From Setoptus koraiensis (lineage: Eukaryota > Animalia > Arthropoda): DNA of 64,000 nucleotides. Every line of letters begins with the position of its first letter. Within the stretch, counting starts at the first letter, position 1. Positions 13,430-44,991 of the stretch are shown in pieces. A program made the translations under genes and the position numbers. The notes beneath the pieces are model-generated. The model made no database searches, was not told the DNA's origin, and saw only the letters and a list, made by a program, of their open reading frames with translations. The DNA lies in the NCBI GenBank assembly GCA_048013815.1, contig CM106585.1, positions 10,168,001-10,232,000 on the forward strand. Reading direction: 5' to 3'.

Positions 13430-13747
13430 ATTTGTGATATATTGCTGCTGATTTTTCAAGGTATGTGTCACGCGCTTTTGTCAGTTTAAAAGGACTTTTG
13501 CAAACCGCATAATGACGACTCATAATCTTAAATATGGTACTTTATATATCGGTACATTGCATATGACCATTAAGAAAAAAGAATGGCCAAGACCGAGAGC
13601 GCGCTATTTGAAACCATTCGTAACGGTTACGTAAAAACAGTTGTGACGTAATGATTGTACGAAAATGTTGCTTGAACCTCCATCATCTATCGACATTCAA
13701 CCAATATGATTATCATCAGCATTCATTAGGATTAAATCGCTATGTAG

Positions 13748-16265: not shown

Positions 16266-16930
16266 ATTTTATGGCGATCTACAGTTGAGTGGGGGCATAA
16301 AACAGATTCTTCTCCACTTTCCTCTAATGTGAATCTCACACATGCCATGCAAATAAATATAGTAGGGCGCCTGGCGTCTCTAATTCCTGTGGTGCCTCAT
16401 GTTTTTGCCGACATATTTACATTAGGTGATCAAATATTCATAAATTTATAGGGACCACAATTGATTGAGGATGAGGAGTGTGATGGCATTACAATCAAGT
16501 CATCTTTTCAGTGGCCTCGAAAAAATTGTAAACAATGAACGTGAACTGGACGCCTGGCGGACATTCATGCGCACTACAAACAACCATATGACAATGATTA
16601 GAACAGCTGGTTTATCTTGTCGAGACATTTCTACATTCTGGATTGCCAAGAATTTATTTATCTGGCTGTAACAAACATGAGTCATCATTCTGAGGAGAAG
16701 CCATTCGTCATCACTCACCGAGTCTCTTCGATGATTACGTATCATTGTAGAGAGATATCATTAGAATAGCTTTGGTTTCGGAGTTTCATTTGGTTCAATT
16801 TAGGCCAAGTATATTATTGTCTGTGTCGAATAACATCTATTTCTCAGTTATCGCCTAGTCGCTCTATTTTTCACTAGAATTAATCTTATAAATAATTTAC
16901 ACAAGGAAACAACATACAAACTGCCATCCT

Positions 16931-17749
16931 ATGGAATTCCCAAACCTTGGCCAACAGTGTGCATTAATAGAATGTAAGCAATTGGACTTTTTACCGGTAA
17001 AATGCGATGCCTGTGATCAAATATTTTGCGCCCATCATTTCACCTACGATAATCACAAATGCAGCAAAGCAAAAGCAAGAGATGTCCAAGTTCCAGTCTG
17101 TCCCATTTGTTCCGAACCAGTGCCCAGTAAAAGGGGCGAACTGCCTGATGTGGCTGTATCGTTGCACATAGATCGATATTGTCGCAAGAATGACAAACTG
17201 GATCCGTCTAAAAGAGTCCAGCCAACTAGCAACTTAGAGAAATGTAATTTTGGTAGATGCAAACAAAAAGATATAATTTATCTACAATGTAGCGATTGTA
17301 AGTCAAAATTCTGCTTAAAGCATCGCCATCCCCTAGATCATCAATGCCCCGGACCCAAAACTCAATGGCAATCATTCGCTGGTGCATGTTCGTCAAGCGC
17401 CTCGTTAGGCACAACAAAGTTACGATCTACCGCGCACCAATGCGCCACAAGCATTGCCAATGGAGCGTCCAAAGCTCACAGTATCATGAGCAGATCTGGT
17501 CAAGAAGCCTTGAATCGACTCAAGAGTAACTCATCCAATTCTACTAGTACTAACGCCAATAGACCAAGGAACGAAATTGTCGAAAGTATTCAGGGCACCT
17601 TGAGCGAACAAGACGCGCTAGATATTGCCATGAGCAACTCCATTGCCGAACAACAGAATCAAAGAAATAGCTCGGTTCTGTCTGATTCACAGCAGCTCAC
17701 GACCAATAGAAGAAATAGTTCCAAGCAGAATGGCTGCACCATGAGTTGA
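16931..17749 (+). CDS. ZFAND2B: AN1-type zinc finger protein 2 (AIRAP/AIRAPL-like), single exon, 272 aa
   Basis: MEFPNLGQQC...LDFLPVKCDACDQIFCAHH...DVQVPVCPIC; a second AN1 finger (CSDCKSKFCLKHRHPLDHQC); UIM-like SEQDALDIAMSNS; C-terminal CaaX (CTMS). Transcribed divergently from DCLRE1A. Confidence 0.92.
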   Translation: MEFPNLGQQCALIECKQLDFLPVKCDACDQIFCAHHFTYDNHKCSKAKARDVQVPVCPICSEPVPSKRGELPDVAVSLHIDRYCRKNDKLDPSKRVQPTSNLEKCNFGRCKQKDIIYLQCSDCKSKFCLKHRHPLDHQCPGPKTQWQSFAGACSSSASLGTTKLRSTAHQCATSIANGASKAHSIMSRSGQEALNRLKSNSSNSTSTNANRPRNEIVESIQGTLSEQDALDIAMSNSIAEQQNQRNSSVLSDSQQLTTNRRNSSKQNGCTMS

Positions 17750-18207
17750 ATTAAAATTGTGTGCAACCTAGGACTCCACTCTAGAATTATATTAATTATC
17801 CATGTCATTCATTCATTTAGTTGAGGTGGGCACATCAGGGAATAAACACTAAGCATTATCCTCCCAAGAATAATACGGCCAGTGAGGAACTAATCTCACT
17901 CATTAGAACTTTGATTATGTCATGGAATAGATGGATGGATAGCGCTTCTACGTAAAAGGAATGCATCTTGTCTTGTTCATGTTTCATATCATCAGCTTTC
18001 GACCGAAAGGATAACACTGAAGATCAACTTCGAGAAAACTGTTTTAATTAAGTCAAAATAGAGCACCAGTAGATCTATAGTCAATAGACCTGATGGTGGT
18101 TTTTAGACATGATCCTGATGCTGTTGTGAATAAAGTGTTTTACAGTTTTGAACTTTTTTGTTAGACACCAGTATTCCATTTGGCCTACTTCCAAATTAAA
18201 TCCATTA

Positions 18208-19410
18208 TCAGTGCTCAGCGGTGTCACCCAGATAACGACCGAGCAATTTCAAAAAGTTTTCGGTGATGAATCGACCTCTAATCGAGTCAATCACTTCAGT
18301 TCTAACCACACCATTATGTCTAGGAGAATTTGTTGTTCGTTTTAAAAGTCGGTTCAAGATGTCTGGCAATGAGTCACGAATGCCGCTAGCATCAGCATTT
18401 ATATCTTCTTTTAGGTAAACTATTTTTCTAGCTAATGATGGGCTGAACTCAAATGATTTGAATTCGATTTCTCTGAGATTTTCTTGATCGCTACTGAAAG
18501 TTAATTTCAAAGGGGAATGTCCAGGTGCTTCGTCACTGACTATCAACTTGATTATTTCGCACATTTGAGCCGTTATTATCCACCAAAACAGGTCATTATT
18601 GTAAGCAAGATCTAAACTTGGCACTGGTTCTGTATAACCCTTTTCTGACAATTTTGCGATAGTGTATATTATGTCCCGCTGATACACAAACAAATGCTGA
18701 CATGCCCAATGAATCCTGTCTAGATTCTTCAAGACATCATCCGAATGCTTTATGCTCACAGTTGGTGCATTTTTCATGTTTGCCATTATTTCCTCAGAGA
18801 AAACAAGCCCCTCTAGTCTATCGCCATTCGTTACAAGCGGAATATTATTGGCCTGTTTTCCTGGCCAATAAAACTGTGCATCGAATAAGCCAATTTCATC
18901 AGTGACGTTGAATATCAAATTTTTAACAGTGTCCATAAGAAAGGGAAAATCTGCATCTTTTTTCACTAACGCTAACTTATCTAGTAACACTCCCTTACAT
19001 AGAGCGATGACTTTTCTCACATAAAAATGAAAGACATTTCCAAGGCTATGTCTAAGAGAGAGAAGTCTTTCATCGTGATATCTGGCAAGATAATCATGAA
19101 CAAATGTATAGCTACAAACGTCGCTCTCTTTACCAACCTCTATAATATTTTTCAGCTCTCTAACGTCATGAACAGGATCTGTTTTTGTGTTGAGACAAAC
19201 ACTCAATAGATTATATGTGGGGCGCTCTTGGCTAAGTTTAATAAAATGTTGAGCGAAATTTTCATTGAAATCGTCCAAAGTGGTTACTTTCTTGAGTAAA
19301 TCAGAACAATTGCGCAATTGTTCATCCTTAAATATACGAACCGATTCAGCAAACTTCAAAAATGTTGCTGTGACTAATATCAGAATGAACAGCTCTGATG
19401 AGATTGCCAT
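18208..19410 (-). CDS. Orphan secreted Cys-patterned protein (400 aa), paralog of 55620-57326
   Basis: First ATG at 19410 gives the signal-peptide-like MAISSELFILILVTATFLKFAES. Long intronless ORF sharing two conserved blocks with the 55620 protein. Confidence 0.75.
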   Translation of the reverse strand: MAISSELFILILVTATFLKFAESVRIFKDEQLRNCSDLLKKVTTLDDFNENFAQHFIKLSQERPTYNLLSVCLNTKTDPVHDVRELKNIIEVGKESDVCSYTFVHDYLARYHDERLLSLRHSLGNVFHFYVRKVIALCKGVLLDKLALVKKDADFPFLMDTVKNLIFNVTDEIGLFDAQFYWPGKQANNIPLVTNGDRLEGLVFSEEIMANMKNAPTVSIKHSDDVLKNLDRIHWACQHLFVYQRDIIYTIAKLSEKGYTEPVPSLDLAYNNDLFWWIITAQMCEIIKLIVSDEAPGHSPLKLTFSSDQENLREIEFKSFEFSPSLARKIVYLKEDINADASGIRDSLPDILNRLLKRTTNSPRHNGVVRTEVIDSIRGRFITENFLKLLGRYLGDTAEH

Positions 19411-20629
19411 CTTGTTGTTCCTGTGCGAATCGTTTATATCCCAATGAAAATATAAAGTTGGACTGAACAAACTCGAAACTCAATCGCGGTAATTAGCTAA
19501 AGCATAATACTTCGCTCGAATCATCTGGATATTTGGCACACATGGATGAGTTATACTAAGTTGGATACTCGAACTGGATTCTATTTATAAATTGCGAACG
19601 ATTCTTAAATAATTTGGACACGAATAGGCAAGGCACCCTCAGGGGAGATATGCAAACACTACGCTTGCGGGAAATTAGATTGGAAACAGTGTATGCCTAG
19701 TCGTGCCTGCACTTGTTGATATTCTTCTTATATTTCGTGCTTCAATCCGATCGCGGTAAATTTTTGTCAGCTCATGACTCTCCCTCCGCTGCCACTAGAA
19801 CTATTCATGACTGACGAGCATGCGAAAGTTAGTATCGTAAGTTTGGAAACTCCAATATTGGAGAGTTGGCAAGGCGACGATTAGAATATTCGGTTCTATC
19901 AGTTCACGTGCAACATCCTTCCTAGTCACAGATGGAAGCATCCTTGACCAAGCGAACGCAGGAATGACCGACGATTTTAGATTGTCGTCAGGGGATTAAG
20001 GAAAGTCAAAGTGCAACAGAATCAAGCTACGCGCCGGTTACCTTTCGTTCATAAATGGTTTCTCCATAAATCTTTTTTCCAACTAAGTATTGTTGGTGAT
20101 CGCCATCCATCGTTTTTAGAGTGATTAGACGAAAGACTCTTACCTGTCCCATCTCCCGTTTCTATTTTGGGAGCTGGGAGCTTTTCATTCCAACGGGGAG
20201 CTTCCCGATAGCCGGGAAAGGCGCCACAGAATTAGCTTAAAAGTAAGCAAATCAATACAATTATTAATGAAATCATGTAAGATCATACGAAATTTATGTT
20301 TCGTCTCTCGTCTAGATTGGGGATCTCCCCATTTTTCTGGGATATCCAAATATTTTCCCGGAGAGTTGACCTCCCCACCTCCTCTAATCCTTGCGTTTTC
20401 AACTCACTCTGAAGCCTGGTGTTCTAATTCAAAAACTTAAGCTCTATATCCAAATTGTAAAGAAAATGGCTAATTCATTTCATCGTATCAATATAGTAAT
20501 CAAAAATCAAATTACATGAACTCAGCATCAACAACTGTTTGGTGGAATCTTAGGAAATCAACTGTTGTTTGATCGAAATTCTTTTTTAGCTTGAACATAG
20601 CATATGTATATGACGACTCCGATTGTCAT

Positions 20630-23600
20630 CTAGGCGCCAGGAGCTGGTAGTGTCTCGAGATCAGAAATGGATCCTTCAACTTCAAATCCGACTTCAAAAT
20701 CTATCTTCACTTTATCTCTTTTCCTAGGCATTTCAATGGATTCAAACTGCTGGTTTTCCATCGATTCAGTTTGTAGTTTGATTTGTCCTTTGGGTTCACT
20801 CGTGTATTCCTGCAAAAATTTTTCGATGGATTTTGAGACGAAATTTTCTTGTCTGACATACGTTTTAATATCCTCCATTATAGAGACTCCGACTTTTGCG
20901 TGAGCTTTGAGATGAGAATAATGCCCTACGAAGAAAGCATCTACTTTTTTAGTCGCTTCTTTTTCTGAGGCCGACTTGATAAGTGATGATCCAACGTCCT
21001 GTCAACAACGAGTATAAGAGTAGAAATGGTTAGGTCAAGGAATTCATATGCTGCAACAAGGACCACGATCGCCACGGTAATTTGCTATTATCTTAACCTA
21101 GGTGATTTTTTTTTTCAGAAAAAAGAGTCGTAGCTAGTTCGCCAACTTCGCCTCTTGCAACCTACCTTGATTACTTTTATGAAAATATCCATGCCAAGTT
21201 GATTATAAAATCTATTGAAATTGTGATCCATAAATTCCCACAGCACTTGTCGACCCACATCTGATGCAGCCATATATTGTAGGTACCTATGTCTATTACT
21301 ATCGCGAACATAGTAACTATTCAGTATCCAATCTATTACTTTACGAGCTTTTGATTTTTCTTCGACTTGGCATAAGGCTAGCGCAATGGACTGTTTTGAC
21401 CCGCTGAAATCTGTCTTTCTGTATAGTTCAAATAGGGCGTCGAATTGATCGTCATCACCAAATTGTGTCACGGCATAATAGATGACCCCTTTGATGGATG
21501 GATCTACTAATTGTTCGTTGTAATAATAAATCAGCTCAAATCTCCTGAGACCTTCCGCTACTGCTGGCTCGTATGCAGTAATAAGACCAGTCTTGAGTAC
21601 TGATGGCCTAGCTATGGTTGTTGCATAAGCTTCATTGCGGTTGCTATCCCAACCAGAGTACCTATACCGATGATAGATACTCTTGAAAAGTTGTCTGCCA
21701 AACTCTTTGAACTTTTTCCGTACACTGGGTGACTTGACAAAGCTTAGCATATTTAGATAGACATCAATTAACTTTGTCACCACTGAACCATTGTCTTCGC
21801 CTTTATAAGAGTTGGTCATTCGCAACATTTCTCTGGCTGACAATTTACCGGCCAAAGTTAAACTATGAGCATCGGCAAGTAGATTGTATCTATCTATTGC
21901 AGATAACTGCTTAGATTCTATGGCAGGATAAAGAGCCTCTCTCAATTCTTTCGAATAGTTTACACAGTAGAAACCTTTGAAATTTGCATTCAATTTTATC
22001 CATTCTCCATGCTGATCATCAACATGAATCTTAGATTTTTCATGCGATAAAACGCCCTTTTGTGTTACATGTGATTTTCCATCGCTCGTAATGAAAGTAA
22101 TAGGCACAATCCAGTTGGGTTTACCTTTATTGGATCCGAATAGATTTTTCCATACGGAGTCAGCACTAGAGACATCAGATGTGAATTTCTTTTGAACTAT
22201 ATCCAATTTGATGGTGAGCTTATCTTTATCTAAGATTTTCTTGGAAATCGATACATCCAAGTAGGGATAGCCCGCTTGACTTGTCCACGATTGCATCATC
22301 TCTTTGATTGGTTCACTACTAACGAACTCCATCGCTGCCCAGAGATCATTTGTTTCGGTATTTCCGTAGGAATGTTTTCTTAAATAATGTTCTAAACCTG
22401 CACGGAATACACTGTCGGACAAGTGATCTTTGAGCTGGCCCACAATGGAGGCACCTTTGTTGTAGGAGATATTATCGAATATAGTTTCGATCTCTTGAGG
22501 GTCATTCACAGAAGCTTGCACTGGATGAGTAGAATGTTTAGCATCGTCGAACAAGGCAACTGCGTGAGAATTTACAACAAACTTTTCCATACTATCGTAT
22601 TGTGGATACAATTCGCTTATGACAAAATATTGCATATATGTAGCAAAGCCCTCATTTAGCCAGAGATCGTCCCACCATGACATTGTGACCAAATTTCCGA
22701 ACCATTGGTGAGAAACCTCGTGTGCCACTGTTTCGGCCACCAAAACTTTGAGCTGCACCGGTGAATTCTCATCGTCGATCAACAAATGTGATTCTCTAAA
22801 AGTTATGAGACCCCAATTTTCCATTGCACCCATTTGGAAATCTGGTATGGCTATCAGGTCTAGTTTTTGTAACGGGAATTCAATATTGAAATAATCCTCT
22901 AGGAATGGCAAACTTTTCAGTGCGACATCAAGCGCGAATTTACCAAATTGTCCGCTGCCTGGCGAAGAGTAAACTCTAATAGGTCGCCCTTTATTTGTGC
23001 CCTCAACATAGTCAAACTCACCCATAATGAAGGCCAGCAAATAGGTTGACATCTTGGGTGTCGTTGCAAACGAAACAGCCTTCTTGTCTCCAAGATCATA
23101 TTCTGATTTGACATGCATATTCGACAGGGCCAGACGGTCTTTTGGTACCATCAAAACAACATCAAAAGTGGCCTTCAAAGCTGGCTCGTCAAAACAAGGC
23201 AATGCTCTACGGGCATTAGTAGGCTCGAAGTCTGTTGTTGCATGATATCTTCTCTCGCCGCTGGCACTTGTATATTCGCTTCTGTAGAATCCCTTCATGT
23301 CATTGCGAATTTCTCCCCTGTATTTGATGGTTAATCGCCCCTTTCCATTGGAGAGATTCGATCGTAGATCTAGCCTAACTATTTCAAACTTTGGACTTTG
23401 ACAGACTCTTACCACCTCTATTACTTCACCATTTTCAGTAGTATAGAAAGCGTCCAAGATATCCAATCCGAGCGAATGCAATACAATTTTATTGCTCAAA
23501 TGTGTCTCTCCGTGTCCAATTTTTTCTAGATCGACCTCAACATCTACAGTTATTGCGTTATGGAAGGTGAAGTATGTCATTTCTGGCTCAATTGCCAAAT

Positions 23601-23847
23601 TATAATGCACTGGTTTGACGTGATTTGGCAATCTTATTCTGTCATAGCAATTGTCATCAACGTCATAAATTCTCGTATTGGGTTCCAGGGAAAAATCTCG
23701 AGCCAACTGGATAATTTGCCGAACTTCCGAACTCATTTCGTGGCTCACTGACGGGTCGATTGACCACAGCAGCAAATAGTCGACGATAATCAGACATTTC
23801 ACTACAGCGCCCAATGACACTCTGGTGCACTTCATCGTTATTTTCAT
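20630..23847 (-). CDS. M1-family zinc aminopeptidase (puromycin-sensitive aminopeptidase-like) with N-terminal signal/anchor; exons 23847-21166 and 20998-20630, ~1016 aa
   Basis: GAMEN and HEVSH-x18-E (WLNEGFAT) motifs, FEPTNARRALPCFDEP, YNKGASIV. Donor AAG|GTAGGT at 21166 and acceptor acag|GAC at 20998 (phase 0) join in frame to the 20630-20878 ORF. Confidence 0.9.
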
Positions 23848-25584: not shown

Positions 25585-25643
25585 GCGAGTGAGAAGACTG
25601 TCGGGTAGAAAAGAGGCGCCATTGTGTTTTTGTGTTGAAATTG

Positions 25644-25649
25644 TTTATT
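25644..25649 (-). promoter_or_regulatory. Candidate polyadenylation signal (AATAAA) of the silk-like gene
   Basis: TTTATT on + strand, ~150 nt downstream of the stop at 25797. Confidence 0.45.
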
Positions 25650-25796
25650 TCAATATTATGTATATAAAAAAGTCTTGCTCTGTTTTGTTTAACTTGACTT
25701 AAATTTGTTACTGTACATACTACACACTAACATTCGTATTTTGTTGTTGACGCACAATGGTTATCCTAATCAGCATTAGATTGTTGTAGCATGCGG

Positions 25797-28700
25797 CTAA
25801 GCAGCAATGTATTTAGCATTCTCCAATCCAACGTTTAATTTCATGCCATCTCCATCGACGTTGCCGATTCTATTTTTAACAATATGATCATTAACATTGA
25901 CGAGATTGTTTTCGTAACCGGATGTGGCTAACGATGTTGTGCCCACTGATATTAGTGAGCCAACTACACCGTTTGAGCTTGTTGTGGCAGTTGAAGCAGT
26001 TTGTAATGGAACAATAGATGATATTGGCGCAACAGCTGGCGATAGATCACTCATGGCCGGCTTGGTCAGTAAGGTGGGCACCGTTGAGCCACCGATAGTG
26101 GCGCCGCCTAAGCGCGTAGATGATATTGCCACCTGACCGTCGGGATTGACAGCAACATTGGGCGCCGTTCGAACAAATTTTGTTACTGGCGTTGTGGTTG
26201 CCATGGCGCTCGGTGTTGATATTGCGGCCGCCGTAGCGGAATTGCCAGCCTCGGGTTGACCTTCGCCCCCCATCTGCACTACTGGATCGCCCATTATTGT
26301 TGATCTTTTTCGTCTAGATGATGAGCCTGATGCTGCTGCTGCTGCCGAATCTCCGGCGCCCGATGAACCGGAAGCCGCCGCTGCTGCCGACGATGACGAA
26401 TCACTGGCTCCCTGGGATGATGTTGAAGAGGCCGCTGCCGCTGCTCCATTTGAGGCTGCTGTTGTCGCTGCAAATAGTGGTAATTGTAGGAATGGGGACG
26501 GCAACAAGCTCATTGGCATTGTAAATGATGGCAATCTATAAGCTGGTGTTGATATCGCTGGAGATGCTAACATTGGGCCAACACCTGACGAACTTATCAT
26601 AGGCGGAGCTAGTAGTGAAGATGATAGGGAAGAGGACAAAAATGAAGGTAACATAGAATTTGACATTACTGTTGGTGTTGCTGATATTGCGGTTGGTGTC
26701 AACATTGTTGGCGCTTGCATGAATGTAAACGGAGCTGACGTAAGATAGCCGGGCAATACACTCAATGGTAATGATGCCGGTGCAACTGCGCTTGCTGAGG
26801 CGCCGCCACTTGAACTGCCACTGCTCGATGATGACACGACAGACGCCCTCTTTCGTCTAACCAATCCGACATCTTCAGCAGCGCTACTACTTACTGCTAC
26901 TAATGAGGGAGCCTCATACGACGAAGCCAATATTGAACCCAAAACAGAACGTTTCTGGCGCAATTCTTCTGACATGTCTACCGATCTCCGTCTTCTGCCT
27001 GACGCGGCTGCTGCTGCTGCTGAGCTACTTGCGGGGGCCGCCGCCACAACTGGTGTCGCTGCCACGACCGGGGTAACGGCCATGACAGGGGCGGCAACGA
27101 TTGCTGGGGGCGCTGGTGCTGATGAAGAAGCCGCTGCTGCTGCTGCGGACCTCTTCTTTCTACCTGCTGCTGCACCCGCTGCTGATCTTGATGCTGCACC
27201 GGCTGCGGCTGCGTCACCCGCGGCTGCTCCGGCTGCCGATCTCGATGCTGCAGCGCCCGCTGCTGCTTGAGGCGATCGTTTCCTTCTACCTGCTGCGGCT
27301 CCCGCTGCCGCCGATCTCGATGCTGCACCCGCTGCCGCTGATCTTGATGCTGCACCGGCTGCGGCTGCGTCACCCGCGGCTGCTCCGGCTGCCGATCTCG
27401 ATGCTGCAGCGCCCGCTGCCGATTGTGGTGATCTCTTCCTTCGACCGGAAGCGGCTGAGGCCGCTGCCGAGCTACTTGCTGGTGCTGCTGCAACAACGGG
27501 TGTTGCTGCGAGAACTGGAGTTACTGCCATCACTGGGCTGGCAACGATTGCTGGGGGCGCTGGTGCCGATGAAGATGCCGCTGCTGCTGCCGCAGATCTC
27601 TTCCTTCGTCCTGACGCAGCACCCGATGCAGCTCCACCGCCTGCTGCTGATGCGGCCGCCGCGCTACTTGCGGGGGCTGCGGCAACAACGGGTGTAGCTG
27701 CGACAACTGGGGTGACGGCCATGACAGGGGTGGCTACCACTGCTGGCGGTGGTGGTGCTGATGACGATGCCGCCGCTGCTGCTGCGGATCGTTTCCTTCT
27801 ACCTGCTGCGGCTCCTGCTGCCGCCGATCTCGATGCTGCACCCGCTGCCGCTGATCTTGATGCTGCACCGGCTGCAGCGCCATCTCCAGCGGCTGAACCA
27901 GCGGCCGATCTTGATGCTGCAGCACCCGCTGCTGATTGTGGCGACCTCTTTCTTCTACCTGATGCAGCTGCTGCCGCTGCCGAGCTACTTGCTGGTGCTG
28001 CGGCCACAACTGGTGTCGCTGCTAGAACCGGGGTTACCGCCATCACTGGGCTGGCGACGATTGCTGGGGGCGCTGGTGCGGATGAAGAGGCCGCCGCTGC
28101 TGCTGCAGATCTCTTCTTTCTACCTGCTGCGGCTCCGGCTGCCGCTGATCTCGAGGCTCCCGCGGCACCTGCAGCACCTGAGCCTCCACTTCCTGAAGCG
28201 GCTCCTGCAGCGGATCCTCCTGAACCACCACTGCCCGATGCAGCTCCTGCTGCGGATCCTCCACTTCCTGATGCGGCTCCTGCTGCCGAGCCGCCGGATC
28301 CTCCGCTACCGGATGCTGCTCCAGCGGCTGATCCACCACCGGACGCTGCACCTGATGCTGCTCCACCTGATCCTCCACTTCCTGATGCGGCTCCTGCTGC
28401 CGAGCCGCCGGATCCTCCGCTACCGGATGCTGCTCCAGCGGCTGATCCACCACCGGAAGCTGCACCTGATGCTGCTCCACCCGATCCTCCACTTCCCGAA
28501 GCGGCTCCAGCGGCTGAACCGCCGGATCCTCCGCTACCGGAAGCTGCTCCTGCTGCTGAACCACCGCCTGATGCTGCTCCTGCGGCCGAACCGCCCGATC
28601 CTCCACTTCCAGAAGCGGCGCCAGCGGCTGATCCGCCACCCGACGCTGCTCCCGCTGCTGATCCACCCGAACCACCTCCGCCTGACGCGGCTCCGGCTGC

Positions 28701-31700
28701 TGACCCACCTCCTGAAGCTGCTCCAGCCGCTGCGGCACCCGAGCCTCCAGCTCCTGCTGCTGCCGCCGATGCTCCCGCTGCTATGGGAACCGCAGCAACA
28801 ACAGGTGTTGCTGCAACCACTGGGGTTGCGATTACTGGATGTGCTGCCGAAGATGCTGCCGCTGCTGCTGATCCTCCGCCTGCTGCAGCTCCCGCTGCCG
28901 AGCCTCCGGATCCTCCACTACCTGATGCTGCTCCTGCGGCTGATCCACCCGAACCACCGCCTGATGCTGCTCCCGCTGCTGATCCTCCCGAACCACCTCC
29001 GCCTGAAGCGGCTCCTGCGGCTGAACCACCACCGCCTGATGCTGCTCCCGCGGCTGATCCACCCGAACCACCGCCTGAAGCGGCTCCTGCGGCTGAACCA
29101 CCGCTGCCTGATGCCGCTCCCGCTGCGGAACCACCATGTCCACCCGACGCGGCTCCCGCTGCTGCGGCTCCTGATCCACCGGCTGCTGCTGCCGCGCTGC
29201 TAGATGCGCCCACAACTGGTGTTGCGGCAACCACTGGTGCCACTGCTACAACTGGGGTAATTACACGACGTGCTGGGGCCGATGCGGCGGCTGCTGCCGC
29301 TGCAGATCGTTTCTTTCTACCTGATGCTGCTGCTGCCGCTGCCGAGCTACTTGCTGGGGCTGCGGCCACAACTGGTGTCGCCGCCATGACCGGGGTAACG
29401 GCCATGACAGGGGTGGCTACGATTGCTGGGGGCGCTGGTGCTGATGAAGAAGCCGCTGCTGCTGCTGCGGACCTCTTCTTTCTACCTGCTGCGGCTCCTG
29501 CCGCTGCTGATCTTGATGCTGCACCCGCTGCGGCTGCGTCACCCGCGGCTGCTCCGGCTGCCGATCTTGATGCTGCGGCGCCCGCTGCTGCTTGAGGCGA
29601 TCGCTTCCTTCTACCTGCTGCGGCTCCTGCCGCTGCTGATCTTGATGCTGCACCGGCTGCGGCTGCGTCACCCGCGGCTGCTCCGGCTGCCGATCTTGAT
29701 GCTGCGGCGCCCGCTGCTGCTTGAGGTGATCGCTTCTTTCTACCTGATGCAGCTGCTGCCGCTGCCGAGCTACTTGCTGGTGCTGCCGCTACGACTGGTG
29801 TCGCTGCGACAACCGGGGTAACGGCCATGACAGGGGCGGCCACCACTGCTGGTGGCGGTGGTGCGGCTGAAGAGGCCGCCGCTGCTGCTGCAGATCGCTT
29901 CTTTCTACCTGATGCAGCTGCTGCCGCTGCCGAGCTACTTGCTGGTGCTGCCGCTACGACTGGTGTCGCTGCGACAACCGGGGTAACGGCCATGACGGGG
30001 GTGGCTACCACTGCTGGGGGCGGTGGTGCGGATGAAGAGGCCGCCGCTGCTGCTGCGGATCTCTTCTTTCTACCTGCTGCTGCACCCGCTGCTGCTGATC
30101 TTGATGCTGCACCGGCTGCGGCTGCGTCACCCGCGGCTGCTCCAGCGGCCGATCTCGATGCTGCGGCACCTGCTGCAGCTTGTGGTGATCTCTTCTTTCT
30201 ACCTGCTGCACTTGCTGCTGCCGCCGACGATGACGCCGCTGGTACGGCAATGTATGACGGTGCAGACATTGATACAATTGGTGCGAGCATAGGACTTGTG
30301 ACAGGTATGGCTGCTGCCACTGGTGCAGCTCCGCCAGATGCGGCCGCTGCTGCTGCTGCGCTTGGAGATCTCTTCTTACGACCGGATGCGGCCGAGGCTG
30401 CTGCTGCCGATGATGCAGCAGGGGCTGGTGCAATCATTGGCTGAGCGGCAAATGTGAATGTCTGCCCTGGGGCAAATTGCATTGGATAACCGTAGGCTCC
30501 TGAAGCCGCACTCGCGGCCGCGGCTCCGCCACCTGAAGCTGCACCGGCTGCTGCTGCACCCGATCCGCCACCTGAAGCTGCTCCGGCTGCGGCTGCTCCA
30601 CCGCCCGATGCCGCTCCTGCTGCACTTCCTGAGCCACCTGAAGCTGCGCCCGAAGCCGCTGATCCGCCTCCAGAGGCACCTGACGCTGCAGCTCCTGCTG
30701 CTGAACCACCGCTTCCGCCTGACGCGGCTCCCGCCGCTGCTGCGCCCGAACCGGAGCCTCCACCGCCTGATGCGGCACCTGCTGCTGCCGCTCCGGATCC
30801 TCCTGATCCTCCCGATGCTGCTCCTGCTGCACTACCTGAGCCACCGCTTCCTCCAGAAGCTGCGCCCGCCGCTGCAGCGCCTCCGCCCGACGCGGCTCCA
30901 GAAGCTGCCGAACCGCTTCCAGAGGCACCTGATGCGGCTGCTCCGGCTGCTGAACCACCATGTCCGCCCGAGGCCGCTCCTGCTGCTGCTGCGCCCGAAC
31001 CGGAGCCTCCGCTACCTGCCGCTGCGGCACCGGCCGCCGAGCCACCATGGCCGCCCGAGGCTGCTCCTGCTGCCGCTCCTCCTGATCCGCCACCTGAGGC
31101 TGCGCCGGCCGCTGCTGCACCTGATCCGCCACCTGAAGCTGCACCGGCTGCTGCTGCACCCGATCCGCCACCTGAAGCTGCGCCCGCTGCCGCTGCACCT
31201 GATCCGCCGGCTGCTGCTGCTGAGGCCGCTGAGCCGCCCGAGATCAATTGTGGCATGTATTGAGCCAGTGAACGAACTGGCGTTAGAACAGTCTGAGCTG
31301 TATATAATCTTGGCTGAGTGTATATCTTAATTGGGGCCGGAAGAACGGCCGGTGCGCTCGAGGAAGCTGCGGCAGCCGCTGCTGCCGATCTCTTTTTCCT
31401 GCCAGCGACGGCAACTCCACCACCACCTGATGTTGCTACACCCCCACCGGATGTTGCGGTAAAACCTCCACCTGATGATGATACAACATGTCCACCATTG
31501 TTCGAAATGGTAGTCATGCCGTTTCCGGATGATGAGATAATTTGATTGCCGTTACCTGATGATATTGAACTAAATGTGCCAGTGCCTGAATTTTTTGCTG
31601 CGTTCTGTGCAGCCGAAGCCATACCGAAAGCAGCAGAGAGTGCATCAGGCGATCTCTTTCTCCTACCTGATGCTGCACCGGCTGCAGATCCGCCTGAGCC

Positions 31701-34700
31701 TCCACTACCTCCCGCGGCACCAGCTGCGGATCCACCACCTGATGCGGCACCGGCCGCTGAACCGCCTGAGCCTCCACTACCTGATGCTGCTCCAGCGGCT
31801 GATCCACCGCCAGACGCTGCACCTGATGCTGCTCCACCTGATCCTCCACTTCCCGATGCTGCCCCAGCGGCCGAACCGCCGGATCCTCCGCTACCGGAAG
31901 CTGCTCCTGCTGCTGATCCACCTCCCGAAGCGGCGCCGGCTGCTCCTGCACCCGAGCCTCCGCTACTTGATGCTGCTCCTGCAGCGGATCCTCCCGAACC
32001 ACCACCACCTGATGCTGCCCCAGCGGCTGATCCACCGCCTGATGCGGCTCCTGCAGCGGATCCTCCCGAACCACCACCACCTGATGCTGCTCCAGCGGCT
32101 GATCCACCACCGGAAGCTGCACCTGATGCTGCTCCACCCGATCCTCCACTTCCCGAAGCGGCTCCAGCGGCTGAACCGCCGGATCCTCCGCTACCGGAAG
32201 CTGCTCCTGCTGCTGAACCACCGCCTGATGCTGCTCCTGCGGCCGAACTGCCAGATCCTCCACTTCCAGAAGCGGCGCCAGCGGCTGATCCGCCACCCGA
32301 CGCTGCTCCCGCTGCTGATCCACCCGAACCACCTCCGCCTGACGCGGCTCCGGCTGCTGACCCACCTCCTGAAGCTGCTCCAGCCGCTGCGGCACCCGAG
32401 CCTCCAGCTCCTGCTGCTGCTGCCGACGCTCCCGCTGCTACGGGAACCGCTGCCACAACTGGTGTTGCGGCAACCACTGGTGCCACTGCTACAACTGGGG
32501 TAATTACACGACGTGCTGGGGCCGATGCGGCGGCTGCTGCCGCTGCAGATCGTTTCTTTCTACCTGATGCTGCTGCTGCCGCTGCCGAGCTACTTGCTGG
32601 GGCTGCGGCCACAACTGGTGTCGCCGCCATGACCGGGGTAACGGCCATGACAGGGGTGGCTACCACTGCTGGGGGCGGTGGTGCGGATGAAGAGGCCGCC
32701 GCTGCTGCTGCGGATCTCTTCTTTCTACCTGCTGCAGCTCCTGCCGCTGCTGATCTTGATGCTGCACCGGCTGCGGCTGCGTCACCCGCGGCTGCTCCGG
32801 CTGCCGATCTCGATGCTGCGGCACCTGCTGCAGCTTGTGGTGATCTCTTCTTTCTACCTGCTGCGGCTCCTGCCGCTGCTGATCTTGATGCTGCACCGGC
32901 TGCGGCTGCGTCACCCGCGGCTGCTCCGGCTGCCGATCTTGATGCTGCGGCGCCCGCTGCTGCTTGAGGTGATCGCTTCTTTCTACCTGATGCAGCTGCT
33001 GCTGCTGCGGAGCTACTTGCTGGTGCTGCCGCTACGACTGGTGTCGCTGCGACAACCGGGGTAACGGCCATTACAGGGGTGGCTACGATTGCTGGGGGCG
33101 CTGGTGCTGATGAAGAGGCCGCTGCTGCTGCTGCGGACCTCTTCTTTCTACCTGCTGCGGCACCCGCTGCTGCTGATCTTGATGCTGCACCGGCTGCGGC
33201 CGCGTCACCCGCGGCTGCTCCGGCTGCCGATCTCGATGCTGCGGCACCTGCTGCAGCTTGTGGTGATCTCTTCTTTCTACCCGATGCGGCTGCTGCCGCC
33301 GCTGAAGAAGATGGTGCTGCTGCTGGGACAAGCATTGGTGCCGGCTGGGCAATGGTCATGTAACTGGGGGGTGTCGCGACAATCGCTGGTGCGGCCGACG
33401 ATGCACCCGCAGCTGCGGCGGCAGCCGATGATCCACCTGATGATCCGGCTGCTGAAGCCGCCGCCGCTGATCCAGAAGAGGCTCCTGAGGCTGCTGCCAC
33501 TGGTGCAACGGCGTATGATGGGGCCATGAAAACTGGCGACGCGGCTACTGCTGGTCTTGCTGCAGAGCTGGCCGCTGCCGCTGCACCTGAACCAGATCCG
33601 CCGGCCGCTGATGCCGCCGAGGCAGCACCGCCTGCGCCTCCTGACGCTGCTCCACTTGCTGCGCCGCCGCCGCCTGATGCCGCGCCACTTGCTGCACCGC
33701 CTCCACTTCCGGAGGCCGCTGCTGCAGCAGCCGACGATCCTGCACCATGCGCTGCACCTATTGCCGCAGTTGGCACGGTCATCATGGCGGCCATGGGTGC
33801 CGCCACCAGTTTTGGTGCTGGTGCGCTAGCTGCTGCTGCTGCTGCGGCCGAACCTGACGCTCCCACTGTTGCGAGCCGATGTTAATACGTTCGAGAACGA
33901 TGAGATTTTTCCGAAACATAATGCATAACGCATGCAAAATCACGGGTAAATGAGATAGAAGGAGATGATTGGAAAGCAGATTATTTTTGTTATTTAACAG
34001 GGTGTTCGTTGATCCTCAAAGTTGCGATTAGTTCTTTCGCTAATATGTTAGTTAGACAGAAGCTAAGTGGATTGTTTGCTTGTTCGTACTTATCGGGCCT
34101 CTGGCATACGGAGCGGATACCGGTACAGCAGCGGCAGCCGAGGCGGCTGGATGAACGGCGGATGCGGCGAGGGCGTTTGGATGTGTGGCAACCATATGTG
34201 ATGCACGTGAGACACTTGAGCCAGCAATAGCCGGAGATGATACCAACGGGGTACCAAGTAGATTCTGGCCCGGTGTTAGTCCGGTTATTGGGTGCGCAAT
34301 ACCACCGGGATGGCTGCCGGACGATGCCGAGACTGCCGCTGCTGCGGTACCGTGTGGGTTTGAACGGCCCCCGCTACCAGCTACATTTGAGCTGCTTGTT
34401 GATGTTGTTGCCGTCGACGATCCCGAGCCTGACGAAGAGCTTGCGGCTGACGCTGCGGTACCGGGCGTACCCGACGTTTCGTCATTTGTGGGGAATGAGC
34501 TTGCTATTAGATCGCGCGTTGTGGCACCCAATAAACCAAATGGTTTTGTAACGGCATTGTCGAACCAAGCACCGGCGGCGGCGCCACCAGTTGCCACCAA
34601 ATTTTCGCCTGTGCCAGCAATACTAGCCAATGGTCTAGTTAGAGTATCGTCGAAACCCGCTCTAACACCGTCTGACCAAACTTTGTTTGCATTGGACAAA

Positions 34701-35452
34701 CTAGTGGCTATGTTTTGCAAGGCCACACCTGTTGTTGTTATTGGTCTACCAATAGCGTCCTTAAATATTTTTGCGTAACTATCTGAGCCAGTTAGAACGT
34801 TGTCTGCACCGGAAGTGAATAATTTCTTTGATGATTTAGCTAAAGCGTCACTAATGCCTTCAATTAAATTGTTGCTCTTATGCTGATGTAATGTAGTGCT
34901 AGTAGCTGTGCCCGCTGCACCGCCACTTGTTGATGTTGTTGCTGTTGTTGAACTACCACCACCACCACCTCCGCCGCCACCAACACCACCTGATGCCGCC
35001 GCAGCGGCAGCTGCAGAACCGGATGCGCTCACTAATCAAGTGATCAATGTCAGAGTTAATTAATATGAACGATAAACAATCGATTTGTATCATCATTGGC
35101 GATATCTGTTAGACTATTCACATACAAAATTCACTATGCCAATATAGTTCATTGGACTCGATAATATAATCTGAAAGATTGCAAACTAAATGGCACTCAG
35201 AATCTCACCTGGCTCACGTAGTCATTAGTTGAAAACTAAACTAGATCTCGTGAATTGCTCTTAAAATTGACTAAATTGCAGATCACGAGCTTGCTAATTT
35301 TTCAGAATAGTAAATCAACGAAAAAACTTATTTTCCTCATGCGCACAAATAATTCACTTACCTAAGGCCAATTGGTGGGTCAAAAGTGCCACAACCATGA
35401 GGATCATCCCCAACCTGGTTGAGGCCTCATGTGAGATAAATGTGCTCCTCAT
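25797..35452 (-). CDS. Giant secreted Ala/Gly/Ser-rich silk/cement-like polyprotein with multiple furin-type sites; exons 35452-35362, 35031-34090, 33865-25797; ~3033 aa
   Basis: Exon 1 encodes a signal peptide (MILMVVALLTHQLAL) and ends TTAG|GTAAGT. Acceptor ttag|TG at 35031, donor ATAA|GTACGA at 34090 and acceptor acag|TG at 33865 are all phase 1, joining ORFs 35354-35548, 34052-35032 and 25797-33866 into 9102 nt. 27 R-X-K/R-R sites; no Cys seen. Confidence 0.85.
26990..33860 (-). repeat. Coding tandem/higher-order repeat array inside the silk-like exon 3
   Basis: Recurrent 39-aa and 51-aa units plus GGSAAGAASG-type arrays; 29211-29420 is identical to 32454-32663. Confidence 0.95.
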
Positions 35453-36911
35453 GGTGCCTAAGATTTTCCGTATTGTTGGTATGTTTGATGTGATTTTAGA
35501 TAAGAAATTAAGAATTGACTCGATTTTTCTCTTCCCATTCGCTCTCAATCTAAGGAGATACTCTCATAATAGATGCTGACCTATGTTAGCCTCACAATTT
35601 CTGTTATGCAGACTACTCACTTTCAAAGCTCCTCTTCTTGATCACAGTTTGTTTTATGAAAATTCTCAACAAAATCTCAATCTATTCCTATAAATTAAAT
35701 ATCTCTCTTGGGACTAATTTTCTTAGGATATTAGTCAAATAAGGTTCCGAGTTATTATATAATGTTGATGGAATTTATATTAGTGTGTGTCGGTTCGTGT
35801 ATGTGTGTATGTCGTGAAACAATTGTTCGAACAGGCACTACACTCAATAGAATATAAATTCAATTAATACTTGTTTCTTACTATATATTCTTGTGTAATC
35901 TCTGAAAAAAGGTAGCCGGCAACAGCAACCAAGACTAAACTATACGTTCTATTTAACTCAATCAAATCGATTCAGCAATTAAGATACACACAGTGTCACT
36001 AGTTATACTTGTAGATACAAATTGGTTGATTTGCCTGAAATGCAGTTAAAATGGATGCTATCAATTTACACACTTGAAATATGTTTTTTTCTGAGTGTAG
36101 TCCATAATCGATGATATAGTCTTGATTAGAATTTATTATTCGCACATAACATGTTAAATATTTGCCAACCACTCCCAATCTGTCTATATGTAATCACAAG
36201 TTACAGCAGCCATAAATACAAAATTTTACATACATTTGTTGCACTTGTTGATTGAACTCAATTTTATAGACCAGTCTTAAACAAACTCAAAACAAATTGA
36301 GGTGTAATTTAATATCAATTACGTTCTACGTTCTAGAGTGTAGCAAATTGATAGCGAATAAATTGTGCGATAACAAAATAATCCATCAATTGATTGAAAC
36401 TTGCAACTATTTGATGCCATTTCATTTAGCTGATCCGACGCTTCAAAATACTATTTCTTCAATCGGTTGCTACGAGACTTACTTTTATGTAACAGATTGA
36501 TAGCTGATTGATTGAGAGATCACACCATGTGAGATATTCGTATGTCAGACATGCCATATTGCAAGATGGATGATAGAAGAAGAATGTTTTTTCCTATGAG
36601 CAAACCAAAAACTAGCCAATTATAAACTACCCGACTAGTAACAACTCAACCTGATTAGCAAACCTCGGCTATTTGCTAGCCAATAATAGGCACTCAAATG
36701 AAAACTTGATTATCACTTTCCATAGTCCAACTTAGTGCCTCACAAGAATCTACTATTTTTTGTACTGAAATTAAAAAACTAGCCCTTTTATTGATTCTTG
36801 CCGGCAATATTGCCTTATCTTAGTCGTTTCTTGAATTCGGCGATCTCTATCTTCGAGTCCTCTATTTTATTTTACTTTATTTTACAGTTCGTCTGACTCA
36901 TCTTTTCTTTG

Positions 36912-39280: not shown

Positions 39281-39970
39281 ATGAAATCGATTGTATTTTT
39301 GTTAATTGTCCTTGTGACAGTACAAATTGTCTCTAATGGGCCGTCTGGCGTTTCGGCGGGAGTCGGTACTAAATTAAAAAATAAGCTTCTCTCCTGTATC
39401 CATCCTAAGGCGAATGATGAGAAAGAAGAAAAACACGAAAAGCACGAAAAACCCGTCGACCCCTATAACCCGGAAAAAGAGCACAAGTTTGAGAAAGAAC
39501 ATGAAAAAGAGCATGATGTTGAGAAAGAACATGAAAAAGAGCATCATGTAGAGAAAGAACATGAAAAAGAACGTGAGGAGAGCCATCGGTATCACGAGGA
39601 TAAATACACCGATAATTTGTATTACGATGATCATCATCATGATCATCATGATGATCATTATGATGATCATCATGATGAACCTCATCACCACGATGAGTTC
39701 TCTCGTCATGAAGAAGAAGAATACAGACACGACAAATACGAAGATGAAAGAGAGTACGAACTAGAGAAGGAATTGAGGAGGGAGCGCGAAGAGAATCATG
39801 AGCTAAAAGAAGATCTTGAGCGAGAGCATGAACTCAGAGAAAGAGAGGAAGAATATGGATCAGGTCGTAGAAGCGAAAGAGAGGAACGATATGAAGAACA
39901 TGGTTCAAGTCGTAGAGGCGAAAGAGAGGAACGACATGAAGAATCCGACTCCGATTCAGACGACGACTAA
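39281..39970 (+). CDS. Secreted His/Glu/Asp-rich low-complexity protein (229 aa)
   Basis: Signal peptide MKSIVFLLIVLVTVQIVSNG; EKEHEKEH repeats from a 30-nt tandem unit (~39491-39572); DDHHHDHHDDH tract; acidic tail. Confidence 0.8.
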   Translation: MKSIVFLLIVLVTVQIVSNGPSGVSAGVGTKLKNKLLSCIHPKANDEKEEKHEKHEKPVDPYNPEKEHKFEKEHEKEHDVEKEHEKEHHVEKEHEKEREESHRYHEDKYTDNLYYDDHHHDHHDDHYDDHHDEPHHHDEFSRHEEEEYRHDKYEDEREYELEKELRREREENHELKEDLEREHELREREEEYGSGRRSEREERYEEHGSSRRGEREERHEESDSDSDDD

Positions 39971-41850: not shown

Positions 41851-42928
41851 CTTATTATAATTGTTTGCTTGTTGGATTTGAAAGTACAATTTGACATTCA
41901 ATATCAGTCAGATCAGTTCATCCCTTCACGCTACATCTAATGTCATTGAAGCCCAGTTATCACAGCTTTGGTTTACCAAAAGCACCGAGCTTTGGCAAGT
42001 TTCTATATATAACTTGCCTCGTGTGCATACCAATTTATCAACAATGACGATCAACTGTGGGGTGCTCGGGATAGGACGCCTTTTCATCTCGTTTGTGAAA
42101 TCCAAGGTTCCTAGGTTATATGAGGCATAGTCGATAGCAAGGACAGGCTCTGAGGTTTAGCGTCGATTTTCTGTAAACAAAGCGGGGTGATTGTCATAGA
42201 ATATGGATTGACAAATCAATGCAACCATATTAGGCGTGAGAAAACGTACTAGAGTTCGGAAGGCCGATCAAGCAAAAGATCTCTGCTTTCGGGCAATCTC
42301 CGAAATATTCGGTTGTCCCACTATACGCAGGATTAGCTTTAGTCTCGAATGGCTCACGCATTTATCTCAGAAATTCAGACGTTGATGCCACTAAAGAGTA
42401 ATCAATTGGTGCTAACAGGATCTTTTCATAAAAGAAATAATTGCTCTACGTGGCTGGAAGCGACCGTTATAGAATAATAACATGGCACGGTCAAAACATC
42501 TGAGTACAGATTCAGATAGCTGTACATTATTTCAAGCTATCTAGAATTGTGAAATGCTGGCCATTTCTAAGCATGCTCAATTGTGCACCGATTTTTAAGT
42601 TGCCAACCACCACTGACAAGAGTGCTTAGTCAGAAGAAATTGTAATTAAACAGACTGTAAAATTAATTGCTATCATGATATATCGTATTGCTAATGCTCC
42701 ATCGCTTGTGCTGTACATTATGTAATGAATATTGAGTCTTTCTGTCAGTCATTCAAACCATTTTCTGGGCCTAACGATTAATCAGCTTGCTACTCTTTGA
42801 ACCTAATCAAAATTGCACTACATCACGAACATTTTCATGATAAGAACCAATCAAGAACCAGTTAGACTGGCATGCCACTTGTTTTATCTTAGAAAAATTG
42901 ACTTTGTCTACGATTGTCTACGACCAAA

Positions 42929-44601
42929 ATGTCATCCCTGTTGGCCTTCTCAAACATTCTTGAGATAAATAACTTTCTGAAGCAAAATTTGTTGATGAAA
43001 ATACTGATAAGCATTGCAACTGTTTGTTTTCTTGGTACAGTACATTTTCTACTGAAACGATACAAGAGGTTGCAATTGTTCAAAAATTTGGGGATACCAA
43101 CGCCAAAAATCAATCTGATAAATGGAAACCTCAGCGAATATATTGAGAATCCTGCCTATTTCGAAACAAATGCAAGATGGGTGAAAGAATTAGGACCGTT
43201 GCATGGCTTTTATTTAGGGGATATGGCCGTTCTACAAGTGAGCCATCCAAGCATTATCAAACAAGTTTTTCAAGATAGGCAAACATTACCGGCGGATAGA
43301 ATTCAGGCAATGACCAAGGAAATAAATTCTGGTATTTTGTTTGTCAAGGATCCTAGATGGAGGACCATGCGCAAGACCATTCAGCCCACATTCAGGTGAG
43401 ATTCAATAAATACTGGTTTGATGTATATTGTTCAATTGTTTCACGCCTATCAAATCTTATACCTTTTCTCGATCCGTCCAATCTTATCGAATGCAGCCGG
43501 TTCAAGATTCAGGATGTGGAATGTGACGCATTAATTGAACAAACTCTCACTAAGATGATGAATTATCTTGAAAAGAAAAGCAAAATTCACAACAGAGCAC
43601 CGTTCGAGATCGACATTATTGGTCTGATGGAGTCAACAACCCTCAATCTGGTATCAGTGCTAGCATTCAACATAACGAATAGAGATGTAAGCGAAGCGGA
43701 TGTGCATGTTGAAAAATTTGAGGAGTTCCTAGCCCGATCCAGATACGAGGGCATCACCGGGTGGTCGATGAGCTTTCCCATCTTACTAACCATTATAAGA
43801 TTTATATTGCAGCACATAACTATGGGCCGATTCTTGAATAATTTAATCACTCATGCAGAGGAAAAAATTGACCAAGGTCTAAAAGAAATCATGAATAATA
43901 CAAGAAGCCCAGATAAGAATAGACATACATTATTGGATTCAATGATAGAGATGCACCACGATGGCCATTTAACTCGTCTTGAGGTTGTAGGGAACGTCGT
44001 GGGGGTATTGATTGCCGGTTACGACACTACAAGCAGCACACTTTCGAGTTTATTTTGGTTACTCGCAAAGCATCGCGAAATTCAAGACAGATTGCGCAAA
44101 GAACTTATAGAATATGGATCAGAAAGTGTGTGGCTAGAGTCATTGATACACGAAACTATGAGGTTGTATCCGGTTGCTGTTACATTCACATCTAGAATAT
44201 TCCAGCAAGATATCGAGCTTGATGTCACAGGGATATTGGATAGTGGCAAAACTAAACTGATGATACCCAAAGGTGTTGTTTTTGTTTATAATGCCTGGGT
44301 GAACAACAGGGATCCCAAGGTTTGGGACAATCCAAACGAATTTATTCCCGAACGTTTCATTGACCCTCAAACTGAGACAATTGATAAGAAATTGGTCGCC
44401 TCGTTGGCCGCTTTTGGTTTCGGTAGGCACATTTGCTTGGGTCAAAACTTGGCCTTCCTAGAAATGAAGACCATCATAACTAAAATTATTCTGTCATACA
44501 GGCTCAAATTGATATCTCCAGACGAGCTCAGATTGGTATCAAAGGCGAAGGTTTTGTCGAAATCAAGAGACAAAATAAAGCTCTATTTCGAACAGATTTG
44601 A
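42929..44601 (+). CDS. Cytochrome P450 (microsomal, CYP3-clan-like); exons 42929-43395 and 43497-44601, ~523 aa
   Basis: N-terminal TM anchor, WRTMRK, I-helix AGYDTT, ETMR (ExxR), PERF and heme motif FGFGRHICLG. Donor AG|GTGAG and acceptor gcag|C are both phase 2. Confidence 0.92.
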
Positions 44602-44712
44602 TCGTATCGGGAGCCATTTACCGACCGGATGTACCCGAAATGAACTGTGAATTATCAGTGATGAGTGCTCGCATCGGCATGATGCATACTTCTTGTGTAG
44701 AGTGTTTTTGAA

Positions 44713-44991
44713 TTATTTATTGCTAAATTTAAAACATGAACAAGTTTTCCATTTATAAAGGCCCAGAAATGAATGATCTTCAACCATTCCAAACTCAAAC
44801 AATTTCCCCTTGCAACATCCTTGACACAATGTATTTTGTTCTTCTGCCGGTAGATAGGATTCATTTGTAGCCACTTGATCGCAAATTTTGTCATCTCTCA
44901 GCAGGAGCGCCGATTGGCTGAGCTGTATGTTGAATGCCATCGTACAAAATCCAAAAAGACAAAACCATAAGAGTGGTGATAAGCTCGACAT
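44713..44991 (-). CDS. Small secreted cysteine-rich peptide (92 aa)
   Basis: Signal-like N-terminus; mature pattern C-x18-C-x2-CC-x23-C-x-C. Confidence 0.65.
   Translation of the reverse strand: MSSLSPLLWFCLFGFCTMAFNIQLSQSALLLRDDKICDQVATNESYLPAEEQNTLCQGCCKGKLFEFGMVEDHSFLGLYKWKTCSCFKFSNK

Follow-up and report, generated by a model that had tools for sequence, protein, structure and literature searches.

A predicted silk-like polyprotein precursor punctuated by convertase-type sites in Setoptus koraiensis

Introduction

What becomes of a silk-like chain that carries the cleavage signals of a neuropeptide precursor? This question is raised by a gene on the minus strand of a 64,000-nucleotide stretch of the genome of the arthropod Setoptus koraiensis (GenBank assembly GCA_048013815.1, contig CM106585.1, positions 10,168,001 to 10,232,000), referred to here as the window. 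The gene encodes a predicted secreted protein dominated by alanine, glycine and serine and interrupted by copies of the motif R-x-[KR]-R. We interpret it as the secreted precursor, processed by a proprotein convertase, of a material made of protein, and give this interpretation a probability of roughly 0.55. Use as one long chain is less likely than cleavage of the polyprotein into peptides with capped ends and short blocks that resemble fibroin.

Convertase-type sites in a silk-like chain

The minus-strand open reading frame (ORF) at 25797–33866 comprises 2689 codons, and its frame is the only one open across the whole 8.07 kb. Ala, Gly and Ser make up 72% of the product (37%, 18% and 17%, respectively), in line with the preliminary description of this locus, which had reported a chain dominated by these residues. 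There are 985 Ala, 491 Gly, 468 Ser, 153 Pro, 138 Val and 13 Tyr residues, and no Cys.

The motif R-x-[KR]-R occurs exactly 27 times in this ORF, as RKKR (16), RRKR (nine), RRRR (one) and RQKR (one). The sites extend from 33267–33278 (the first) to 26304–26315 (the last), and the residue that follows them (P1') is Ser in 26 cases and Ala in one. The number of motifs, their end coordinates and the 26 serines had all been given in the preliminary description, and a recount returned the same values. Arg occupies P4 and P1 at every site, P2 is Lys in 26 and Arg in one, and P3 is Lys, Arg or Gln. Gly stands at P5, the amide-donor position, in 24 of the 27. All runs of four basic residues fit the motif. 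Outside them, pairs of basic residues are limited to two RR and the KR within RQKR. Of the 147 Lys and Arg residues, 107 lie inside sites.

Shuffling the same protein 2000 times gave a mean of 0.19 sites and a maximum of three, against the 27 observed, many of which are copies made by module duplication and do not represent 27 independent events. Independent support comes from two further findings: the sites end every type of module in the protein, and they recur in relatives from other organisms. R-X-K/R-R is the furin consensus where it lies exposed in a secretory protein, and Gly followed by basic residues is the signal for amidation by PHM/PAL. The putative sites match the furin specificity profile, with the amide-donor Gly ahead of them. 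A processing signal is favoured over an accident of composition because of this match, and because sites with Gly at P5 recur in relatives in which the intervening sequence has diverged. From this pattern, we infer cleavage at the sites.

Gene structure and expression

The gene model rests on Logan contigs from four runs, which were aligned to 33500–35900. In the run designated X4, a 1013-nt contig (depth 13.8) matches the window at this locus with zero mismatches and joins 35620 to 35456 and 35362 to 33865. Read on the minus strand, each of the two skipped introns begins with GT, ends with AG and has a depth of 0. The contig is a spliced transcript, and the gene is real and expressed. The resulting features, all on the minus strand, are as follows:

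35620–35900: 5' non-coding exon (X4 record 23); the contig runs at least 23 nt past 35900, and a 163-nt skip, CT..AC on the plus strand, leads to 35456.
35362–35456: signal-peptide exon; ATG at 35452–35450, 30 codons plus 1 nt (phase 1), donor G/GTAAGT at 35361.
34052–35031: alternative exon (exon 2 of the preliminary description); phase-1 acceptor, no start codon of its own, stop at 34052–34054; skipped in the assembled transcript.
25797–33865: large coding exon; 2688 codons plus the 2 nt that finish a Val codon, acceptor AG/TG at 33866/33865, stop at 25797–25799.
25644–25649: polyadenylation signal AATAAA, about 150 nt past the stop.

According to the same contig, transcription starts upstream of 35900. 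A signal peptide had been proposed, and the ATG exon does encode, by inspection, a basic n-region followed by an 11-residue hydrophobic core (LGMILMVVALL); this exon is spliced into the transcript contig. In the isoform represented there, the signal-peptide exon is joined straight to the large exon, giving a protein of 2719 amino acids (aa). Of the three-exon, ~3000-aa model put forward earlier, the gene, the ATG exon and the large exon therefore stand, while the middle exon is skipped in the sole spliced contig. The 3' end of the gene (25600–27000) is covered to 0.70–0.94 in four runs of the study that gave the spliced contig, and partly in two RNA-labelled runs.

The skipped part, 34052–35031, has a separate X4 contig (record 26, 34427–34758, depth 3.8), and the flanking intron has a depth of 0. 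Over its first 14 residues, V-S-A-S-G-S-A7-S, it closely follows the start of the large exon, V-G-A-S-G-S-A7-S, and the two starts differ mainly at third codon positions. Since it also has a phase-1 acceptor and no start codon, it must be an alternative exon that uses the same signal-peptide exon. Its product may be either a 356-aa protein that ends at its own stop or, by onward splicing to the large exon through one of eleven weak phase-1 GT donor candidates (for example, 34089), a protein of 3033 aa. A branch-point-like motif, TTAAC, lies approximately 25–30 nt upstream of both the alternative exon and the start of the large exon (33808–33865).

The base composition of the locus follows from its product. 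G+C is 0.59–0.67 at 26–34 kb, against a window background of about 0.40, and G+C at third codon positions (GC3) in the large exon is only 0.355, compared with 0.405 for seven neighbouring genes. The high G+C is thus due to amino-acid composition and not to the locus. Codon choice is skewed towards codons ending in A (GCA 53%, TCA 42%, CCA 60%), a bias that is typical of silk genes too. Plus-strand ORFs inside 26–34 kb, such as that at 27712–29595 (+), were considered and rejected as genes. These antisense or off-frame ORFs, up to 627 aa in length, are by-products of GC-rich, stop-poor repeats.

Modules and selection

Most of the large exon is an array of modules. The parts of the protein, on the minus strand, are listed below:

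Ahead of the first site: one N-terminal piece of 196 aa.
26985–33278: module array, bounded by G-R-x-[KR]-R; nine A, nine B and three C modules and two unique pieces.
Module A: nine copies of 38–48 aa; Ala/Gly, with two or three Arg and one Asp.
Module B: nine copies of 51–60 aa; uncharged, with poly-Ala ends flanking a Pro/Val/Thr core; grand average of hydropathy about 1.1.
Module C: three copies of 295–395 aa (21–29 kDa); a B-like head, then GGS/AAGAAS repeats.
Unique pieces inside the array: two, of 84 and 56 aa.
25800–26984: non-repetitive C-terminal region; three further sites, giving pieces of 8, 30, 177 and 169 aa.

The modules are arranged in the order A B A A B C u C u A B B A A B C B A B B A A B, where u marks a unique piece. 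Judged by their sequences, B peptides resemble triblocks in which poly-Ala flanks a hydrophobic core on both sides, and C blocks resemble small fibroins. The earlier proposal of a cocktail of ~28 structural peptides thus needs to be revised in one respect: the furin-profile sites that define the pieces do recur in relatives, but the pieces are not all short, three being 295–395 aa long.

At the DNA level, module copies are 75–95% alike, and the differences between them are mostly synonymous. Per pair of copies, module A shows 7.6 synonymous and 0.33 non-synonymous codon differences, and module B shows 14.75 and 3.8, respectively. It follows that the peptide sequences have been kept by strong purifying selection, and that the array is not an assembly collapse.

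These data bear directly on the idea that the locus was created by misassembly, or that it is a low-complexity repeat in decay with no functional product. GC-rich repeats do yield long ORFs in several frames, and repeat arrays are prone to misassembly. Here, however, a single frame is open over 8.07 kb, the copies differ by 5–25% in DNA and do so mostly synonymously, the spliced transcript has an untranslated region, a signal peptide and a polyadenylation signal, and the same architecture is found in other organisms. An artefact had been named from the outset as a possible reading of the locus; it is largely refuted, and we consider it very improbable.

A conserved N-terminal domain and its relatives

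The alternative exon carries a conserved domain:

34478–34885, minus strand: conserved N-domain of ~135 aa, with about four degenerate helical repeats.

Relatives of this domain were found at four other loci. An exhaustive phmmer search with the N-domain against 1.84 billion representatives returned just two clusters, P0001 and P0002, both of unnamed sequences from metagenome and run assemblies, with no annotated relative among the matches. A pattern scan of metagenome contigs added two further related loci. Identity between the window's domain and those at the four loci is 51–64% in domain alignments, and up to 69% in local tblastx alignments. Alignments A1 and A2, with six sequences from five loci, contain 66 invariant columns, including the blocks DN.LTG.D, RP..T.GVA.QN.ATS.SNANKV and FDNA.TKP. 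Three of the loci share the layout of the window gene:

L001: found in the assembly of a public run.
L003: found on a contig labelled 'plant metagenome'.
L004: from an environmental metagenome, Joint Genome Institute (JGI) sample 3300010395.

All three have a signal peptide, the 135-aa domain, a low-complexity Ser/Thr/Gly/Ala stretch and peptides bounded by G-R-[KR]-[KR]-R. The stretch from the domain through the array forms one exon, which follows a phase-1 intron placed as in the window, and in L001 and L003 the signal-peptide exon also ends in phase 1. The contigs of L003 and L004 stop inside their arrays. Among the relatives' sites, nine of ten have Gly at P5. In L003 and L004, the P1' residue is Gln, and the peptide starts with QAAAGAA, as module A of the window does once its Ser-Pro is passed. 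A peptide with an N-terminal Gln that ends before Gly and basic residues is a textbook substrate for a pyroglutamate (pGlu) N-terminus and an amide C-terminus, so the relatives would produce peptides capped in this way. The lengths and sequences of the modules differ greatly among relatives, and only the caps and the composition are kept.

Beyond the domain, the 177-aa piece of the window can be aligned, from RRKR onward, with the C-terminal tail of P0002 (BLASTP E 8e-7). The fourth locus, L002, is a short gene with the domain only, a parallel to the possible short isoform of the window. On the L002 contig (66.9 kb), chitin synthase is an uninterrupted single ORF of 1794 aa (10358–15742, minus strand), and for this reason its source is read as an intron-poor, chitin-making animal. 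The relatives stem from samples associated with plants. The window and the related loci showed no synteny, and since they have no neighbouring genes in common, these loci do not come from close relatives.

The domain and the array are contiguous in relatives, an arrangement that appears to be the ancestral one. The internal alternative acceptor in the window's species seems to have been gained by duplication of the exon start, given that both parts form one exon in relatives and that their 14-residue starts are nearly identical.

Further searches gave little to place the domain or the array. The N-domain profile has no relative among PDB sequences (a chance match only, E 0.46). AlphaFold2, run on six sequences, predicted a helical domain at a confidence score (pLDDT) of 42.7, and the model is unusable. 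The weak look-alikes in the ESM Atlas (score 0.77) are phage tape-measure proteins, and these were dismissed as compositional resemblance. Pfam has no family for the termini at E<=1, none for the whole 2689-aa product at E<=0.01, and none for the alternative exon. Word-indexed protein searches with the C-terminus, the A/B-module block and the N-domain profile returned nothing or P0001 only, their candidate lists being swamped by low-complexity words. Together, the window gene and its relatives define a family, not previously annotated, that combines a signal peptide, a 135-aa N-domain and Ala/Gly arrays punctuated by G-RxxR.

Comparison with known systems

The window protein resembles spidroins and the fibroins of insects and mites in its very long single coding exon, its 72% of Ala, Gly and Ser, its poly-Ala runs and Gly-rich repeats, its bias towards codons ending in A or T, its non-repetitive termini and its secretion. 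It differs from them in that its termini have no homology to spidroin N- and C-domains (no Pfam match), and in that 27 convertase sites would dismantle the chain. The sites thus argue against an intact long chain of the kind found in spun fibre silk. In Tetranychus urticae, 17 Gly/Ala/Ser 'fibroins' with 27–39% serine have been predicted, which are unverified as silk components (PMC4856440, PMC12534534). Membership of an already described mite fibroin or cuticle family was looked for by Pfam, PDB and phmmer (the 1.84 billion representatives above), and there was no match. Pfam gives no match to the defining domains of arthropod cuticular families (the R&R chitin-binding family and others defined in Pfam) in the 2689-aa product or the alternative exon; a loose AAP[AV]-like motif in module B is the sole resemblance to cuticular low-complexity regions.

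A second set of similarities links the gene to multi-copy amidated precursors, such as those of FMRFamide-type neuropeptides and the multi-peptide antimicrobials of arthropods. These, too, have a signal peptide, tandem peptide types bounded by R-x-K/R-R, Gly before the basic cluster, Gln after it (as in the relatives) and a fixed stoichiometry per messenger RNA (mRNA). Their products, however, are short receptor ligands or cationic amphipaths, whereas those predicted here are 38–395 aa long, of low complexity (Ala/Gly/Ser/Pro/Val), silk-like and nearly uncharged, and come from a precursor of ~2700 aa.

Structural polyproteins are also known. Profilaggrin, the nematode polyprotein allergens cut at RxKR, the diatom silaffin precursor and the fish antifreeze glycoproteins all yield many copies of a product per gene. 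The resemblance lies in a repeated, non-signalling product and short spacers recognised by proteases. The sequences and organisms are unrelated to those considered here, none of these precursors is known to give amidated poly-Ala peptides, and the window gene interleaves three classes of module in a fixed order. In tropoelastin, as in the window protein, hydrophobic Pro/Val/Ala domains alternate with poly-Ala domains that bear basic residues. The Lys residues of elastin are, however, spaced by two or three Ala and cross-linked, while the window has a strict R-x-K/R-R cluster after Gly, and there is no sequence relation.

A search of the full-text literature found no silk-, cement- or cuticle-like protein, nor any other structural one, in which signals for convertase and amidation recur along the chain. 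The gene is probably known in kind, as a multi-copy convertase-processed precursor, and what would be new is its cargo, a silk-like material instead of signalling peptides.

Cut or uncut, material or messenger

Several considerations weigh against our interpretation. The material role is read from composition, and to call the material a fibre, a glue or a cuticle component is a guess. We know of no well-studied precedent for short, uncharged, Ala-rich peptides as a building material. The evidence for splicing is one assembled contig, and isoform proportions are rough k-mer depths. Other observations would suit one of two rival explanations. The main rival is a long, uncut silk- or elastomer-like chain, in which RKKR forms charged spacers, cross-link sites or sites that bind polyanions or chitin between the poly-Ala blocks, much as Lys-bearing poly-Ala domains serve for cross-linking in tropoelastin. 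Known fibroins work as long chains, the composition and codon bias are silk-like, and hydrophobic Pro/Val-rich segments alternate with poly-Ala segments that flank Lys pairs. The second is a multi-copy precursor of bioactive peptides, which might be antimicrobial, antifreeze or anti-desiccation agents, pheromone carriers, or salivary effectors delivered into a host plant. Multiple copies, convertase sites, amide caps and possible pGlu caps follow the logic of bioactive precursors. The relatives were recovered from plant-surface metagenomes, and the type I antifreezes of fish are about 37 aa long, rich in Ala and amidated. Precedents for such an organisation are the polyproteins of antifreeze glycoproteins and the multi-copy precursors of antimicrobial peptides.

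The details of the sites speak against the uncut chain. The conserved residues are the Arg at P4 and P1, not Lys, and RRRR, RQKR and a relative's RKRR have no Lys pair. The conserved Gly before the cluster and the Ser or Gln after it have no role in cross-linking, and instead fit amidation and pGlu capping. Furthermore, furin-type enzymes are ubiquitous in animal secretory pathways, and a disordered chain that offers them 27 optimal sites is unlikely to stay uncut. We disfavour the uncut chain and regard it as an unlikely account of the gene.

The properties of the predicted products count against bioactive peptides. They are of low complexity and nearly uncharged, and they lack the aromatic and cationic residues of antimicrobial or receptor-binding peptides. 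More than one third of the chain consists of the three 295–395-aa Gly/Ser/Ala blocks with fibroin-like repeats. The variation of module length and sequence among relatives, where only caps and composition persist, is easier to reconcile with a material than with a ligand. We likewise attach little probability to this explanation. A cleaved precursor for a material is favoured because its products would be nearly uncharged, Cys-free and rich in Ala and Gly, with B modules that resemble triblocks and C modules that resemble small fibroins.

A proposed route from precursor to material

Under this interpretation, a furin-type proprotein convertase would cut after each site, in the trans-Golgi or in secretory granules. 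A carboxypeptidase of the D/E type would then trim the four basic residues, and the exposed Gly, present at 24 of the 27 sites, would be turned into a C-terminal amide by PHM/PAL. One mRNA would thereby give nine A peptides of ~38 aa, nine B peptides of ~50 aa, three blocks of 21–29 kDa and several unique end pieces. These products would assemble non-covalently through poly-Ala and Gly-Ala beta-sheets, as in silk. Non-covalent association is proposed because no Cys and almost no Tyr or Lys would remain, and the ends would be uncharged. The resulting material could be a fibre, a coat, a cement or a matrix. Where the alternative exon is used, the 135-aa helical domain could follow the signal peptide, with a stop or the array coming after it.

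A more specific version of this scheme is put forward tentatively. In it, the animal material is a genetically fixed mix of poly-Ala peptides, end-capped by an amide and possibly by pGlu, and short fibroin blocks. The mix would be released by the machinery of neuropeptide processing and would self-assemble through beta-sheet stacking of the poly-Ala ends, with an N-terminal domain made optional by splicing.

Neighbouring genes

The genome around the locus is compact and intron-poor. Its gene content, the chitin synthase on the L002 contig and the plant-associated sources of the relatives together suggest small arthropods with few introns, probably plant-dwelling mites. The regions 12379–23847 and 42914–57326 hold mostly single long ORFs, which encode an aminopeptidase N-like protein of 910 aa, an SNM1/DCLRE1-like protein of 528 aa and an AN1-type zinc-finger protein, together with a two-exon P450 gene and a two-exon gene for an Nrf-6-like acyltransferase. 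The remaining ORFs of interest are listed below:

10241–10834, minus strand: ORF whose N-terminal half is a Pax3/7-like paired domain, then poly-Gln/Ser.
39281–39970, plus strand: 229-aa ORF with a signal peptide followed by an extremely His/Glu/Asp/Lys-rich sequence (HEKEHEKEH and DHHHDHH repeats); no Pfam family.
45451–48339, minus strand: 962-aa single ORF with Thr/Ala/Pro-rich stretches, one KRRRR cluster and a Gly/Ala-rich middle; local G+C 0.51; no Pfam family.

The product of 39281–39970 may be a metal-binding or mineral-related secreted protein. That of 45451–48339 has no sequence relation to the polyprotein.

Implications

The locus introduces a small, unannotated family, whose conserved domain has no solved relative and whose members occur in tiny genomes of arthropod type associated with plants. 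The peptides predicted from it are concrete and synthesisable, and they provide exact targets for mass spectrometry. If the gene is such a precursor, the convertase, carboxypeptidase and amidation pathway would serve the bulk production of a material and not signalling. If the working units are the peptides themselves, the gene would provide a natural example of a silk-like material in which short, capped peptides of defined sequence assemble supramolecularly at fixed ratios, a design that peptide-materials chemistry tries to engineer. A material built from capped units in this way would represent an undescribed route to a silk-like biomaterial.

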